Shown here piece after piece: positions 1 through 34,340 of a stretch of DNA of 34,766 nt. The position numbers and the translations under genes were made by a program. A model generated the notes under the pieces. It did not search any database. It was not told the DNA's origin and was given only the letters and a program-made list of their open reading frames with translations. Source of the stretch: Octopus bimaculoides (taxonomy: Eukaryota); the NCBI RefSeq assembly GCF_001194135.2, contig NC_068984.1, forward strand, positions 91,059,855-91,094,620. The letters are read 5' to 3'. Positions within the stretch are counted from its first letter, which is position 1; each line of letters opens with the position of its first letter.

Positions 1-239
1 ATGTGTATGTTGTTGTCACAGATCACGTATGTGTGGTTGTGCATGTTTTTATGTATCTATGTTATGAAAAATAGGTAAAGAATACTGAGAGGAAAGTTTA
101 ATCTATGACTTTGTATGTATCACTTTCTCTTTCTCTCACTCTCCCTCTTTTACTCTTACTCTCTATATTATATGTTGAGCGTGTGGAAGAAATATAAAAG
201 TTGCTAGAAACAACAGCCAAATCTCCCTTAAATCACACA

Positions 240-401
240 AAGTAAACGGAATTTTAAAAATCTAATTACTGCACTGGAAAGTTCACATCGAGAAAATTCC
301 ATTGATGTAAAAATTTTTACAAAAAAATGGAAAATGTGGATTTCTATACACTTTTAAAAAGGCTTCACACAGACACACAACTTCAGCTTTATATATTAAG
401 A
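240..401 (-). mobile_element. Helitron-like 5' terminal fragment
   Basis: Minus strand reads A|TCTTAATATATAAAGCTGAAGTTGTGTGTCTG from 402/401, the A|TC start and ATATATAAAG motif typical of non-autonomous Helitrons. No matching CTAG|T 3' end found; inner boundary approximate. Confidence 0.35.
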
Positions 402-911
402 TATTGCATTCAATTTATGGTGACAACTCTTATATTCCCTCTAAAATTTACCATTTTTGAATTTATACATTTATGCCATAGCATTAAGTGAGGGAGAAAC
501 CAGCCTTAATTGAATGAGGGCAATAGCTCATTATATGTCAACTTTTGTAGAAAACAAAATTATTCTTTCCAATGAAGTATAAATAATTTCAGGCAGATGC
601 TATGACTTAGTGATACATTGAAACAATGCCTGTTATCACATATGAATTCACATGTTAAGATTGATTTGTTTTTTTATTTGGCTGTTCCTCTATATAATTT
701 CCTTTATATCTCACATTTGAAATTATGAAACTAAAATATAGCATATATGGTGATATGTTCAGCATGTATGTCTCCAGTCATTGAATGACTATTCTATCCC
801 CACTAGCTGTTGAACATTAGTTTGCTCTATATCAAAACATCAAACCTATTCTTGTCCCTCCTCATTTCTACATCTTTGCTTACCCAAGTCAATTGTATCA
901 GTTAAAATTAC

Positions 912-993
912 CTGATACTCTTTTGAATTCTGAAACCATCAGGATAAGCCTGAACTTTGGCATCACCATGACCATAATATGTACCATTTTCAG
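912..993 (-). CDS. Candidate coding exon 2 of an unidentified divergent gene (-ENGTYYGHGDAKVQAYPDGFRIQKSI-)
   Basis: Minus strand: acceptor ...tttatattag| then CT GAA AAT GGT ACA TAT TAT GGT CAT GGT GAT GCC AAA GTT CAG GCT TAT CCT GAT GGT TTC AGA ATT CAA AAG AGT ATC AG|gtaatt. 82 nt, open, phase 1 in and phase 2 out, matching the phase-1 exon at 4679-4712. Polypyrimidine tract is weak. Confidence 0.55.
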
Positions 994-3180
994 CTAATAT
1001 AAATTCTTGTCCATGTAACATTTTATTCTATCTTTCAATTTCCATGGTTTTTCACTTACTCCTTCCATTATCTTGAATATTATTCAGTATAATCAGTATA
1101 ATTACCCAACCACTTGTTTATTTGTTGTATTCTCACATTAATTTCAAGCCACTGTTGATTTTTCATATAATTCATAGATAAGCCAAAGCATCATCATTGT
1201 TGTAAGTTAAAGAAAAACAATGAAAACTTTGTTATCTACTGTAAATGTTTCATTTTGAACTTTTCAATCAAGGTTTGTTAAAAGTGAAATATTAAATCAG
1301 CTGATTTTGCCCTGAATCATTATGTGGCTTTTGTCTCATGCTTTCACACCTAGAAATGTTATATCAAGTATTTCTTAATGACGTTCCTTCATTTGAAGTC
1401 CTTTGGGTGTTTTTGGTGGCAAGCCTAACATGCTGCCCAATTTGACATCACTATCTGCTCTTTGAAGGTTGTTGATGAAGTTTACTCTGTTGTAAGCATT
1501 CAGACCAAACTCCAAGTTTATCTCCATAACTATGTTTTGCTTGCAGATGTTGAAATTGGGCATTAATCTCACCAGTCTAGAACTAATCGCATGGGTCATG
1601 GGAACTAAACTCCTCTTTCAATGAACAAACTTTTAATTAGTGGAATGTAATGTACAGGTAGGAAAGGATTCATTCAAAAACTCTGTTGATTACTTGTACA
1701 ATGTAGGATTTATCTATTATTAGCTAGAGGGAAAGGGGCAGTACCCATGACTGCTGCAGGTCCTCCCAGATTGGTGTGATCAAGGGAATTGATGTTTGAG
1801 CATTGGCTAAAATTACAATAGTTGTAAGAAAGAAAGATTGGATAAAGGAATTAACATAATAAAACACCAAAAAGAGGAAGATAATTGGGTGGCCCTACAT
1901 GGAAGGAGTATAAAGCTAGCTAGTTCAGAAAAGCAGATAGAAGAAAATGCATGTCTGCGGACTAGTGGTCGCAGCGTATTCATGAGTGTCTCCATTATTA
2001 TTATATTTGAGACTATTTGAGAAGGTAGCAGTTTTCAAGGATTTTGTGCATTGTTTACTTGAAGGCTGGTCATACAAGAATGTTTCCCAGATATATGTAG
2101 TGATTGGTCTTGATGCTATCAAAAGACACTAAGGTGTTAAGTTCTAATTGGAGCATGTTTTCAAGCTCTCTGTTTATTGACCCAGTATATATGACATATC
2201 TAAACTTTGCGTGTTGAGTGGGGATTAAGGACTGTATGTTAACTAAATAACAGGAGTTTTTTTTGTTCAAATCAGTTGAAGATAATTGTGAGATGTATTG
2301 TAATTAAGTGTCAGAAAGAGGGTTGGATGGGTAAAGCCAGGAATTAGTCATTAAAAGAATTTGAAAGTATACTTTGAGTGAGTATGTAGAATGCTTATTG
2401 GGTGGGGTTATTCCTATTTCTATAACATGTATATTTGGTGGGATTAGTTGAAGGGGTTTGTGAGTGCTAGGGCCCTAATTGTTTTAAGTTTATGTAAGCT
2501 GTTTCTCAGTCAGTGTACCGCATCTTTAGCAGGGGAAGTAACTTGTGAGTTTTTATTTATTTATTTATTTTTTTGTTTCTCTTTGTCAGACTTTTGACAG
2601 AAAAAACCCTGATGCCAGCATCAAAAAGGGGATATATAACACTAATGATAATCATAGAGATGAGTTACTTATTTGAAATTAATTAGAGTTTAAGATAGCT
2701 GACATAAGCATTCTTCATATTTCAGCAGAAAGAAATTTTTTACTTCAGAAAGTTTAACTGTAGTTAAAGAAAGGTTTCAAATGAGAAGAGGTGAGGTGTA
2801 ACAGGTGTTAATGGCATGAATGAATTCAATAGCATAGTCTTCAGTATGATACTGCTGATAATAATGTTTTCTAACATAGGTAATGTCATATATTTTGTGG
2901 GAGAGGTATTGTTGATTATATCAGCATGAGAAGGATGAACTGACCGTGAAACTGACCTTGAGCATTTATATATGCTGGTGTTGTTATTTAGGTAGTGTTT
3001 ACTGTAAGGGAGATTTGGTTGCCATTTCTTACAAGTTGAGTGAGCATGCAGAAACTCCTTTGCTGGTTTGCATTCATAAAAAGCTACAACAGCTAAGGCA
3101 CAGCCTCTAGGGATCAATTGATTTACTTGAAATAATAACAAAATCTCCTTTGGATCACTTTCTTTTATTAATTTTTTTGT

Positions 3181-3886
3181 TGCAGCCATGCTGGAGCACT
3201 GCCTTTAGTTGAACAAATTGACCCCAGGACTTATTCTTTGTAAGCCTAGTACTTATTCTATCAGTACTTATTCTAACCGCTAAGTTATGTGGATGTAAAC
3301 ACACCAACATTGGTTGTCAAGTGATGGTTGGAGAACAAACTCAGACACACAAACATATACAAACGGCATATAAAAAACACTATCCGAACCTGGTTGACAC
3401 CAGGTCTGCCTGACTGGCTACTGTGCCAGTGGCACATAAAAGGCACCAACCGATTGTGACCGATGCCAATACCGCTTGACTGGCTCCTGTGCCAGTGGCA
3501 TGTAAAAAGCACCATCCGAACGTGATCATTGTCAGGCCTGCCTGACTAGCTCCTGTGTCAGTGGCATGTAAAAAGCACCCACTACACTCTTGGAATGGTT
3601 AGTGTTAGGAAGGCATCCAGCTGTAGAAACTTTGCCAGATCAGATTGGAGCCTGGTACAGCTGCTGGCTCTCCAGACCTCTGTCAAACCGTCCAACCTAT
3701 GCCAGCATGAAAAACAGGCGTTAATCGATGATGATGATATATATGCAACAGGCTTCTTTCAGTTTCTGTCTACCAAATCTACTCACAAGGCTTTGGTCAG
3801 CCCAAGGCTATAGTAGAAGACATTTGCCCAAGGTTCCACACATGTGGTTGGTAAGCAAGCTGCTTATCACACATCCACTCCTGTCT
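3181..3886 (-). mobile_element. tRNA-derived SINE (CORE-like), interrupted by a nested insertion
   Basis: Head at 3750-3886 (minus: AGACAGGAGTGGATGTGTGATAAG...GGAACCTTGGGCAAATGTCTTC). Tail at 3181-3367 is closely similar to 34406-34641. The middle is split by the element at 3368-3738. Confidence 0.75.
3368..3738 (+). mobile_element. RTE-LINE 3' end (66-bp minisatellite plus (GAT)n tail)
   Basis: Three 66-bp units starting at 3411, 3477 and 3543, then CACTACACTCT...CCAACCTATGCCAGCATG...GATGATGAT. The same tail is attached to RT-coding copies at 20133-22082 and 33310-34273. Confidence 0.8.
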
Positions 3887-3969
3887 AAAAAAAAATTAAG
3901 GTGCATAAGATAATGTATTCCCAGATTCATTAAAACTAAAAAATAGGAAATCTCAGCTAGAACATCTTT

Positions 3970-4196
3970 GCTCAATCATTATTATGAACTAAATGAGCTA
4001 AGGAGGAGCTTCTATGCAGGTGTTCGACCTGCTAGAAATAGTAACCAAATCTTTGTCATAGTAGACTCTACTATCTTAAAATATAAGGTTACATAAAAAT
4101 AAAAAAAAGTGTAGCCCTGAATACACTGTGCATGAAAAAAGATGGTCACATCTGGAATGCCTTTATCGTAAGTTTGAGGCTAAACAACAGACTGAA
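3970..4196 (+). repeat. Interspersed repeat (GCTAGAAATAG..CCAAATCT family)
   Basis: The core GCTAGAAA(T/C)A..A(G/A)CCAAATCT(CCCT) recurs at about 203-228 (+), 3008-3035 (-) and 4030-4051 (+). Family not assigned; boundaries approximate. Confidence 0.5.
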
Positions 4197-4678
4197 ATAG
4201 AAATTATCTGGCAAGCTAGCGCTACAGGTGGGACTAGTCATAGGCCTGAAAAGTGTAATGTGATAGAGCAATTTTATTAGGGAGACGAATTTACAACATA
4301 TACTCAGGTTGTCTCTATTTCAATTCATTGAGAAACAAAGCTGCTGGGCAAATTTGAATTGCCTCTTCTCTTAAATAGGAACATAAATAAATGAAATAGG
4401 AGCCGCAAACCATTTAGTATTGTATAAATTACTGATATGAAAATTACAAAATTATTATAATGCTTCTGAGAAAATAAGATACGAGTTAAGAAACAATATT
4501 ACTGTAGCTAAACAAAGATAGTATTCAAAAACATGTTCATGGAAGTATTGAGAAGTTGGGAAATATATGATAGGAAATTCTGGTAAATGAGTAAATACCA
4601 TATTCAGGAGATGTTAGCAAAATTAAAAGAAAAAGATATCTCCCAACAAAATTATCTGCTTAACATTTGGTTACTTAC

Positions 4679-4712
4679 GTTTCAAATAAAGCTTTTTGTT
4701 TTTAACAGCCAT
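4679..4712 (-). CDS. Candidate first coding exon of an unidentified divergent gene (MAVKNKKLYLK-)
   Basis: Minus strand ACG ATG GCT GTT AAA AAC AAA AAG CTT TAT TTG AAA C|GTAAGTAA: good Kozak context (A at -3, G at +4), consensus donor GTAAGT, phase 1. Lies in a CpG-enriched zone directly behind two X-boxes. Confidence 0.65.
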
Positions 4713-5147
4713 CGTTATGTTGTCATAGAAACAGTTGCTATGAAAACTTTATTTTCGTAGTTATTAAGTAGAATTTAGGGCTAATCCTTTCAAAATTGTC
4801 TGAAATGAAGTATAAAATGTTATTTTATAATTTACTATGATATACAAAGCTTTAAATATGATTTAGCTATTTATTCTAATTTCACTCTATAACGATTTTA
4901 GAAAACCGGTTATCAGCATCTGTTGTTTCGTATCTCCCTTCTACATAAATTATTTGTCTAAAATATTGAAATAATTTATCTATATAAATTACCAGAATTA
5001 TTTAAAACCAGTTTTTAATATATCATATAATATTTCAATTAATTTGTAGAAAGTGGGTGATTCGAGTGGAGTTGCGGTGTGTGGTTTCAGCTGACCTTGA
5101 CTGGTTGGGTGTCGAAGCCCTGAGGACTCCGAGATTGTTGTTACACT
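4713..5147. promoter_or_regulatory. Putative bidirectional promoter and 5' UTRs
   Basis: 435 bp between divergent ATGs (4712 on -, 5148 on +). CpG is visibly enriched from about 4650 to 6060 compared with the CpG-poor introns. Confidence 0.55.
4719..4747. promoter_or_regulatory. Two tandem RFX X-box motifs
   Basis: GTTGTCATAGAAAC (4719-4732) and GTTGCTATGAAAAC (4734-4747) both fit GTHNYY-AT-RRNAAC exactly and are separated by 1 nt. Confidence 0.75.
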
Positions 5148-26854
<21,707 letters not shown>

Positions 26855-31891: not shown

Positions 31892-32102
31892 NNNNNNNNN
31901 NNNNNNNNNNNNNNNNNNNNNNNNNNNNNNNNNNNNNNNNNNNNNNNNNNNNNNNNNNNNNNNNNNNNNNNNNNNNNNNNNNNNNNNNNNNNNNNNNNNN
32001 NNNNNNNNNNNNNNNNNNNNNNNNNNNNNNNNNNNNNNNNNNNNNNNNNNNNNNNNNNNNNNNNNNNNNNNNNNNNNNNNNNNNNNNNNNNNNNNNNNNN
32101 NN
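31892..32102. other. Assembly gap (211 N)
   Basis: Run of N, followed by (AT)n. Confidence 1.
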
Positions 32103-32138: not shown

Positions 32139-34340
32139 GATGTGTAAGGTATTTGAGGACACACCTTTTTTGGGTCATTGCTGCATTTGCTAACTCTGTA
32201 TAATCTTTGTTTCAGAAAATAATAATGGCAGACCCTCAGCTTACTCAAGAAATGAAGAGGTGTACTGTTATTGTGGTTATAAAGGCTGAGCATAGCAATT
32301 GAGAAATATCTTGATTTTTAAAAGTTGCCAGATCTTTCACCTACAAAGTTTGTAAGGAGCTAGAAACTGAAGATGGAAACGTATCACAAGCATAAAAAGT
32401 ATTCTAAATGCTCTGAAATGATCAGAATAGCTGAATTTATCCAACAAAGTTCAACAGACCATTGATTACAATCCCAGAGAGTCCATGAGGTCAGTTGCAA
32501 AAGATCTCCATGTGTCAGAAGGAACAGTCAGAAATGTTGTCCACAAAGACATCAATCTTATATGATAAGGAAAGGTCAATTTGTCAGAAAAAGCCAAAAA
32601 AAAAAAATCACTACTTCACATCTAAAAGGCTCTTAAACAAACTGAAAAATCCAGAGAAGATTTGATTTTGTTTTTCTCAAATGAGAAAAACTTCAACCAA
32701 GATCAAAAAGTTAACAGAAGAAATGACAAATGGTTATGTGCAGACCCTTCTGAAGTTCCAAGTGATATGCATACAAAATTTCCTGTAATTATGATGGTTT
32801 TAGCGGTTGTCAACAATGAAGGACATGTGATGCCTCCTTACTTCTTTCCAGAAGGCTTTAGAGTTACCTCTGCTGCCTACATTGTGGTCCTGAAAATAAT
32901 TCTTAAGCCCTGGATAGACAGTGAATGCAACAGAAGGCCATATGTGTTTCAGTAAGACTCTGCACTATTACACATGGCTCTTGTAACACAGGAATGGATG
33001 GCTGAAACGTTTCATGATCACATAAGCCCTAACATTTGGCTTCCTGATTCCCCAGATCTCAATCTATTGGATGTGGAGCATTGTTGAGAGAGAGAGGTCA
33101 ATGAACATGTCCATAACATCAAAGATTCTTTGAAAGCTGCCACAGTCAGAGTAATGTCCAAAATGAACAAGGACCACTTGATTCGAGCATGTAGATGATT
33201 TAGATCTCATATACAAGCAGTTGTTGAAGCTGAAGGTGGCTTTATTGAATAACATTATAGAAAAGAAGGTTTATTTTTATACTCATAGCATTTTTTGATA
33301 AATAGAGTTAAACATGGGCCGTGACTGGTGATGACATGCGTAGGCTCGAAAGAGATGAAGCTAGCATGATCCGCTGGATATGTAATATCAGTGTGCACAC
33401 GACAAAGTGTAAGCACCCTGAGAAAAATGTCGGACATAAGAAGCATTGGATGTGGCGTGCAAGAGAGAAGTCTGCACTGGTAAGGTCATATACTAAGGAT
33501 GGATGAGGAGAGCTGTGTGAAGAAGTGCCACTCCCAAACAGTGGAAGAAACCTGCGATAAAGGGAGACCCAGGAAGGCATGGGATGAGGTGGTGAAGCAT
33601 GACCTTTGAACGCTGGGATTCACAGAAGCAATGATGAAAGACTGAGACCTCTGGAGATATGCTGTGACCGAGAAGACCCAGCAAATAAAGTGAGATCACA
33701 GCTGCAGTCTATGCCAGTATCACATAACCAGCCCACTCAAAAGTAGCTTTTGGATTGTAGGGCAACATGCCGTGCTTGAGGAGACCAATTGAGTCAAGTA
33801 CATCAACATCAAAATCAAATCAAACCACAATCAAATGGAAATTGTAGTTGTAACTGATGCCAGCACTGCCTGTCTGGCTCCCTTTGCCGGTGGCATGTAA
33901 AAATCACCATCCAAACGTGGTTGATGCCATCCACCTTGCCCTGACTGGCTCCTGTGCCGGTGGCATATGAAAAGCACCACCCAAAGGTGGCCAATGCCAG
34001 TGCCGCCTTGACTGGCTCCCATGCTGGTGGCATGTAAAAGCACCATCCAAATGTGGTTGATGCCAGCCCCCTCTGGCCCCTGTGCCAGTGGCTTGTAAAA
34101 AGCACCCACTACACTCTCGGAGTGGTTGGCATTTGGAAGGGCATCCACTTGTAGAAAACACTACCAGATCAGATTGGAGCCTGGTGCAGCCTCCTGACTT
34201 CCCAGACTCCCCAGTCGAACTGTCCAACCCATGCCAGCATGGAAAATGGACGTTTAGCAACGATGATGATGATCATTATCTGTTATTATATATGTTTTTT
34301 TATAAACATAAATCTGTCCTCAAATATCTTATGCACCCTG
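32136..34340 (+). mobile_element. Tc1/mariner superfamily, maT (DD37D) transposon, degenerate
   Basis: 26-bp TIRs (32136-32161 and 34315-34340, 22/26 identical) flanked by TA. Transposase remnant 32225-33252 has FSNEK (D to N), DSALLH and WLPDSPDLNLLD, with 37 residues between the second and third Asp. Several stops and frameshifts. Confidence 0.9.
33310..34273 (+). mobile_element. 5'-truncated RTE-LINE nested in the maT element
   Basis: Starts at TWAVTGDDMRRLERDEASMIRWICNISV, homologous to the intron-10 copy; then 3' UTR, four minisatellite units and a (GAT)n tail. Sits between the transposase stop and the right TIR. Confidence 0.9.

Follow-up and report, generated by a model that had tools for sequence, protein, structure and literature searches.

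A contiguous pair of X-boxes at the 5' end of a probable MORN2 gene placed head to head with DLAT in Octopus bimaculoides

Introduction

A 34,766-nt stretch of the Octopus bimaculoides genome, hereafter the window, raises the question of why two X-box motifs stand side by side immediately upstream of the ATG of a short, anonymous minus-strand exon, and of which gene they serve. Each X-box binds an RFX factor as a dimer, with one winged-helix domain on each half-site. The published DAF-19/RFX consensus, GTHNYY AT RRNAAC, is a 14-bp imperfect palindrome. Human X-boxes concentrate within +/-500 bp of the transcription start site, on either side of it, and X-boxes near the start sites of ciliary genes are normally activating. 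Cooperation between RFX and forkhead factors of the FOXJ1 type at ciliome promoters is documented, and promoters with several X-boxes are known from C. elegans F25B4.2 and seven other genes, from exon 1 of human MAP1A and from the yeast RNR genes, which are controlled via Crt1. The original prediction for this locus, made from the DNA alone, was that the gene next to the pair is an RFX target and possibly an uncharacterised protein of the cilium or sperm flagellum. Here we examine the quality and rarity of the motifs, the identity of the genes on either side of them, and the promoters of the orthologous genes in other animals.

Results

The paired X-box

The window holds only two matches to GTHNYYATRRNAAC, at 4719-4732 (GTTGTCATAGAAAC) and 4734-4747 (GTTGCTATGAAAAC), and these are as first described: both 14-bp motifs match the consensus with no mismatch, on either strand, and are separated by a single A (4733). 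The resulting 29-nt element spans -7 to -35 from the minus-strand ATG at 4712-4710, again as first described, and hence lies well within 500 bp of an ATG or transcription start. In the orientation of this gene the distal box (4734-4747, minus strand) reads GTTTTCATAGCAAC and is the best-scoring site of the window, while the proximal box (4719-4732, minus strand) reads GTTTCTATGACAAC, a single base away from the validated bbs-9 X-box GTTTCCATGACAAC.

A scan with a position weight matrix, proposed together with the original prediction, was made with a matrix of the 30 validated 14-bp C. elegans sites in Table 1 of Chu et al. 2012 (PMC3245922). Under this matrix, which is of nematode rather than mollusc or JASPAR origin, the distal box scores 18.12 bits and the proximal box 18.07 bits on the minus strand, their plus-strand values being 14.65 and 14.70 respectively. 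The validated C. elegans sites have a median of 19.0 bits under the same matrix (range 6.2-24, n=30), so that the octopus boxes, at 18.1 bits each, fall within the validated range. They are also the two highest scores in the window, the third-best site reaching 13.6 bits. As both score 3.4 bits lower on the plus strand, they form a same-orientation pair, and the stronger xxCAAC half of each faces the minus-strand gene. By inspection, both boxes fit the restricted Drosophila consensus GYTRYY N1-3 RRHRAC (PMC2375033); neither comes within two mismatches of the mammalian-type GTNRCC(N0-3)RGYAAC, from which each differs by three on inspection.

Such sites are rare. The consensus is expected to give 0.32 strand-matches per window in shuffled sequence, and simulating 30 Mb of sequence as a first-order Markov chain of the window's composition gave one site per 129 kb, close to the one per 150-200 kb first estimated, and not one adjacent pair. 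Independent pairs of consensus sites within 50 nt should number 8e-5 per window, and pairs at a matrix threshold of 18 bits 3e-6, in line with the initial judgement that such a pair is improbable by chance; sites of at least 18 bits are expected once per 625-990 kb.

The pair could still be a non-functional motif that arose by chance or local duplication in AT-rich DNA, or a part of a transposable element. The window is indeed repeat-rich, with SINE-like units, a reverse-transcriptase fragment and piggyBac-like fragments, the pair as such is not conserved in four other molluscs (see below), and if box 2 was duplicated from box 1 the pair statistics overstate rarity. Against this, one site of at least 18 bits in a given 100 nt already has a probability of 1.6e-4, and the two 15-nt units agree at 10 of 15 bases and differ only at degenerate positions of the consensus, as though the motif were under selection. 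Membership of a high-copy repeat had been named as a finding that would count against the original prediction; within the window, the pair has no second copy and is part of no repeat family, TRF detects no tandem repeat at the X-boxes, and Rfam found nothing over the window as a whole. The pair moreover stands at the promoter of what is probably a gene with X-boxes in other phyla and bound by RFX2 in mouse, and we regard a lack of function as very unlikely.

Elsewhere in the window, a lone 13-bp X-box-like sequence, GTCTCCAAGTAAC (26820-26832, minus strand; 15.7 bits on two half-sites with a 1-nt spacer), sits in a transposon-rich stretch with no nearby gene start. The repeats include RVT_1 reverse-transcriptase and piggyBac-like DDE_Tnp_1_7 fragments (20875-22013, minus strand; 25199-26293, plus strand) and several copies of a SINE-like unit of about 66 nt, and further repeat coordinates are 3345-3609 and 33872-34136. 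Long TA/CA microsatellites lie at 10.6 kb and 30.6-31.2 kb, and a 211-N assembly gap at 31892-32102.

The plus-strand neighbour is DLAT

On the plus strand, the gene that begins 435 nt from the minus-strand ATG encodes DLAT (PDC-E2). Its first exon (5148-5266) encodes a mitochondrial presequence-like N-terminus, is identical to the Biomphalaria DLAT start over its initial 11 nt, and ends in a phase-2 donor at 5267, after nt 119, the same position and phase as in Elysia. Exons for the lipoyl domain (11134-11376; Pfam Biotin_lipoyl, 2.7e-18), for the linker and E3-binding domain (11820-12090 and 13415-13594; Pfam E3_binding) and for the catalytic domain (14173-14260 and 15588-15737; Pfam 2-oxoacid_dh) follow on the same strand, each also found by tblastn. 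The best database identity of this DLAT is 60-68%. PDHX was considered and rejected, as a phmmer search of PDB sequences gave 4e-133 to mammalian DLAT vs 3e-42 to PDHX.

A single lipoyl exon was detected, corresponding by alignment to the inner of the lipoyl domains in mammalian DLAT, and the 5.9-kb region of the first intron (5267-11133, plus strand) yielded no outer one. Given this single lipoyl exon and the length of annotated mollusc DLATs (505-510 aa), mollusc DLAT may carry one lipoyl domain.

The interval between the two start codons (4713-5147) is a candidate shared bidirectional promoter region, the divergent starts being less than 1 kb apart when measured between start codons. The corresponding intervals are 329 nt in the scallop and 660 nt in Elysia. 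DLAT was seen in four molluscs, the sea slug Elysia, the chiton Liolophura, the scallop Argopecten and the snail Biomphalaria, and in every one of them the gene head to head with it is MORN2; the divergent loci span 9340-10001 (L002), 7323-10001 (L003), 9671-10001 (L004) and 8308-10001 (L006), and 4679-5266 in the window. Three non-molluscs lack this pairing: the neighbour of MORN2 is a mitochondrial carrier gene in Nematostella, DHX57 in sturgeon and CFAP69 in Styela. Judged by gene order in these loci, DLAT-MORN2 is a mollusc-wide microsynteny, in which a housekeeping mitochondrial gene is paired with a cilium gene.

The minus-strand exon as the probable first exon of MORN2

The coding part of the putative MORN2 exon 1 is 34 nt long (4679-4712, minus strand; ATGGCTGTTAAAAACAAAAAGCTTTATTTGAAAC). 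It encodes MAVKNKKLYLK plus 1 nt, ends in phase 1, and is followed by a consensus donor, GTAAGT (4673-4678, minus strand). Its ATG has the context ATAACGATGG, with A at -3 and G at +4. Orthologous MORN2 proteins are about 146 aa long and contain Pfam MORN (PF02493). Among nine orthologues that have introns, ranging from Nematostella to sturgeon, coding exon 1 has 7-10 nt and likewise ends in phase 1; it is typically ATGCCTG|GTAAG, with GTAAGA, GTAAGG or GTAAGT as donor. The exon in the window thus shares the phase of its orthologues and is 27 nt longer, and its end, TTGAAAC|GTAAGT, occupies the position of the orthologous ATGCCTG|GTAAG. As such, synteny and exon structure, rather than protein similarity, make it very probable that this exon belongs to MORN2.

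It is conceivable that MORN2 has moved or been lost here, and that the X-boxes serve some other gene, a non-coding divergent transcript, or nothing. The available 4.7 kb (1-4678) contain no further MORN2 exon detectable by tblastn, and the N-terminus is unlike that of the orthologues, which are of the MPGEKK type. MAVKNKKLYLK has no confirmed protein or transcript counterpart; phmmer with chiton MORN2 returned no MAVKNKK-like N-terminus, its matches being dominated by large MORN proteins. In addition, the ATG lies inside an ATGGCTG that aligns with a non-coding promoter element, ATGGC(G/T), that is conserved in other species. These points are set against a head-to-head DLAT-MORN2 arrangement in four of four molluscs and a conserved phase-1 donor and promoter layout. 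Furthermore, first introns of orthologues reach 6.9 kb, so the remaining MORN2 exons probably lie beyond the window, and the want of exon 2 is what would be expected in a large genome. Assignment of the X-boxes to anything other than MORN2 therefore seems to us highly improbable.

One candidate for exon 2 was considered, at 1005/993-912 on the minus strand and ending ENGTYYGHGDAKVQAYPDGFRIQKSI. Although it is in frame with exon 1 and vaguely MORN-like, we rejected it as unsupported: it has no Pfam hit or homologue, its tblastn alignment to MORN2 (E~0.7) crosses a stop, its acceptors are poor, and it ends in phase 2, vs phase 1 for the orthologous exon 2. A resemblance to Elysia, 'YPDG..IQ', was dropped because it is partly intronic read-through in Elysia. 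The stretch itself (912-1027, minus strand) is a stop-free NKMLHGQEFILAENGTYYGHGDAKVQAYPDGFRIQKSIR up to a CAG|GTAATT donor, with a faint likeness to MORN and in the frame of exon 1; it may have arisen by chance, or be an exon that has decayed or is specific to the lineage.

X-boxes at MORN2 promoters outside the molluscs

The strict consensus, with up to one mismatch allowed, is missing from -1000 to +300 of the first seven orthologue loci obtained, and for this reason matrix and half-site models were used instead. The cross-species scan took the best site of a spacer-flexible (1-3 nt) matrix in -400 to +100 of MORN2, with each 20-30-kb locus serving as its own control; these promoter limits were set before the last four loci were obtained, though after the first had been seen. 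The best sites were GTCTCCTAGCAAC at -100 in Nematostella (17.9 bits, empirical p 0.026), GTCGCCCTGGAAAC at -332 in Styela (17.8 bits, p 0.003), GTTTCTGCGGTAAC at -304 in Watersipora (14.8 bits, p 0.002), ATCTCCTTAGAAAC at -154 in Saccoglossus (11.8 bits, p 0.13) and GTCTTCACAGAAAC at -160 in sturgeon (11.4 bits, p 0.076), and in the Amphiura promoter no full X-box rose above background. Non-mollusc MORN2 promoters are consequently enriched in full X-boxes under the C. elegans matrix, in 4-5 of six species (Fisher's combined p=4e-5).

Two of these promoters have further features. That of sturgeon carries GTAACCATGGTGAT followed by GTCTTCACAGAAAC, 8 nt apart (L009, about 9819-9854), and with two adjacent X-box-like sites there, a double site is not peculiar to the window. 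The Styela site GTCGCCCTGGAAAC (L012, about 9669-9682) is the best X-box of the entire 21-kb locus and falls in the interval that separates MORN2 from CFAP69, a divergent ciliary gene; that interval could possibly be a shared, RFX-driven bidirectional cilium promoter.

A half X-box block in other molluscs and an ATGGCG-type element

Conservation of the boxes in other molluscs had been put forward as a check on the original prediction, and the outcome was divided. The full pair is missing from the four non-cephalopod molluscs: at MORN2 of Elysia, Biomphalaria, Argopecten and Liolophura no full X-box exceeds background (Fisher p=0.94), so that the pair in the window would be lineage-specific or recent. 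What these promoters do have is a half X-box, within a block that is conserved among them and placed 60-120 nt before the ATG. In Elysia (L002, about 9400-9430, minus strand) and Biomphalaria (L006, about 9885-9915) it contains the same non-coding 29-mer, CATTGCCATAGAGTTGTTTACAAATGGCG, whose counterparts are CATCTCCATGGTTTTGATTACAAATGGCTGC in the scallop (L004, about 9900-9930) and GTTGTAACCATAGTGCTC in the chiton. The block opens with the half X-box (G/A)TNNCC AT RG, at -88 to -117 and in constant orientation, and this is the top half-site in each of the four promoters (Fisher p=0.036). In the gastropods it is followed, 3 nt away, by the forkhead core TGTTTAC and then by AAATGGCG, which we take to resemble a YY1 site.

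Nematostella, Saccoglossus and the molluscs have in common an A(A/T/G)ATGGCG(G) element that comes after the X-box in their MORN2 promoters (L008, about 9900-9945; L007, about 9845-9880). In the window, ATGGCTG (4706-4712), which contains the putative start codon, is found 6 nt past the proximal X-box. From its location at the place of the ATGGCG element, we infer that the ATG in the window may derive from a promoter element. The ATGGCTG start, together with TTGAAAC|GTAAGT in place of ATGCCTG|GTAAG, suggests a possible turnover of the start codon.

Discussion

Our reading of this locus is that the 29-nt element is probably a genuine pair of RFX sites at the 5' end of a MORN2 orthologue, within a 435-nt bidirectional promoter region shared with DLAT. 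The proposal that the adjacent gene is an RFX target with a role in the cilium or sperm gains from the quality of the motifs, the synteny of MORN2, the biology of MORN2 and the X-boxes at MORN2 in other phyla; the part of it that falls is that the gene is uncharacterised, MORN2 being a known gene. Speaking against our reading are the lack in the window of any MORN2 coding exon beyond that of 34 nt, and X-boxes that are closer to the ATG than the nearest validated C. elegans site (-60). The conserved DLAT-MORN2 pair, the 29-nt gastropod block, and the recurrence of an X-box with an ATGGCG-type element from sea anemone to deuterostomes indicate, at the level of sequence comparison, that RFX control of MORN2 is ancient and that the sites themselves turn over.

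The known biology of MORN2 is that of a motile-cilium gene. In Xenopus, morn2 expression is specific to multiciliated cells, the protein lies along the axoneme, and knock-down gives fewer and shorter cilia, ciliogenesis being dependent on Morn2; orthology to the Chlamydomonas central-apparatus protein C1a-18/FAP227 has been proposed (bioRxiv 10.1101/2025.05.20.655211). Kistler et al. 2015 (PMC4498915 Table S1) list mouse Morn2 among the testis targets of RFX2 in ChIP-seq and as a high-stringency CilDB gene, one that is not differentially expressed in Rfx2-/- testes. MORN2 does not occur in the accessible portion of the supplementary text of PMC5838959. Vertebrate MORN2 is hence an RFX-bound gene of motile cilia and testis, and the gene in the window is probably, by synteny, of the same family.

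In this animal, a factor of the RFX1/2/3 class would bind each X-box as a dimer and would activate MORN2 in spermatids and in cells with motile cilia, a forkhead factor of the FOXJ1 type probably acting alongside, and the second X-box may raise occupancy or tune the level of expression. Their short distance to the ATG, 7-35 nt, most likely puts the boxes at the transcription start or just downstream of it. This position also allows a different view, in which the boxes are real RFX sites that do not simply activate MORN2, and instead repress or cap its expression or act on the DLAT promoter 0.4 kb away. A location at the transcription start or in the 5'UTR implies that they are probably part of a transcribed leader, precedents for repression or tuning are the distal X-box of C. 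elegans F25B4.2 and the exon-1 pair of human MAP1A, through which RFX1 and RFX3 repress, the promoter region is common to DLAT, and mouse Morn2 is bound by RFX2 yet unchanged in the knockout. Nevertheless, X-boxes of ciliary genes that are proximal to the start site normally activate, MORN2 serves the motile cilium and has X-boxes in many phyla, no link to RFX is known for DLAT, a housekeeping enzyme of mitochondria, and the two boxes are about equally strong, unlike the strong and weak partners of described pairs. On balance, a role other than straightforward activation of MORN2 is distinctly unlikely, and we favour activation.

An X-box promoter at a known RFX-bound cilium gene is a well-known regulatory arrangement. 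In the DAF-19/RFX promoters of C. elegans bbs-9, xbx-2, dyf-3 and che-13, the same 14-bp GTHNYY AT RRNAAC is promoter-proximal to a cilium gene. The validated C. elegans sites lie at -60 to -767, whereas the pair in the window, 15 bp from centre to centre, abuts at -7 to -35, and the host is a mollusc with several RFX paralogues, whereas C. elegans has one. The sturgeon MORN2 sites are weaker than those of the window and 22 bp apart from centre to centre, and the neighbouring gene there is DHX57, not DLAT. Promoters such as those of F25B4.2, MAP1A and the yeast RNR genes, like the one described here, have more than one X-box per gene, with a proposed role in tuning expression level, and the MAP1A pair in exon 1 is comparable to the 5'UTR position in the window. 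Published pairs of X-boxes are 50-110 nt apart, unequal in strength and in several cases repressive, in contrast to the contiguous, equal and same-orientation pair in the window. What is unusual here is therefore that boxes of equal strength are directly adjacent and extremely near the ATG.

The comparison with other molluscs bears on how this arrangement came about. The gastropod MORN2 promoters, with a half X-box 3 nt from TGTTTAC, recall promoters under joint control of RFX and a forkhead factor (FOXJ1, Fd3F, FKH-8). The 435-nt interval in the window has no canonical GTAAACA and only two loose RYAAAYA matches, and the second full X-box stands at the place of the gastropod forkhead-like element. 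A further unusual feature of the locus is that the half X-box/forkhead-type module of other molluscs appears to be replaced in the window by two full X-boxes. A more specific and tentative scenario, rather unlikely in its entirety, is that an ancestral mollusc module of half X-box, TGTTTAC forkhead-like element and ATGGCG was rebuilt in this lineage and the start codon shifted. A second full X-box would have arisen out of the forkhead-like element, so that two boxes of the same orientation came to abut. These would recruit two RFX dimers cooperatively, leaving the gene dependent on RFX alone. The ancestral start codon, in ATGCCTG|GT, would have given way at the same time to the present TTGAAAC|GT, with the upstream ATGGC element supplying a new in-frame ATG. 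If true, the locus would be a compact example, open to dating, of how cis-regulatory elements and a start codon turn over at a cilium gene of deep conservation.

The X-box pair leaves the current picture of RFX biology unchanged. Through synteny and exon structure, an anonymous 34-nt exon gains the probable name MORN2, and the locus offers a compact candidate promoter for a gene of motile cilia and sperm in a mollusc, a group in which cis-regulatory elements are almost unstudied.
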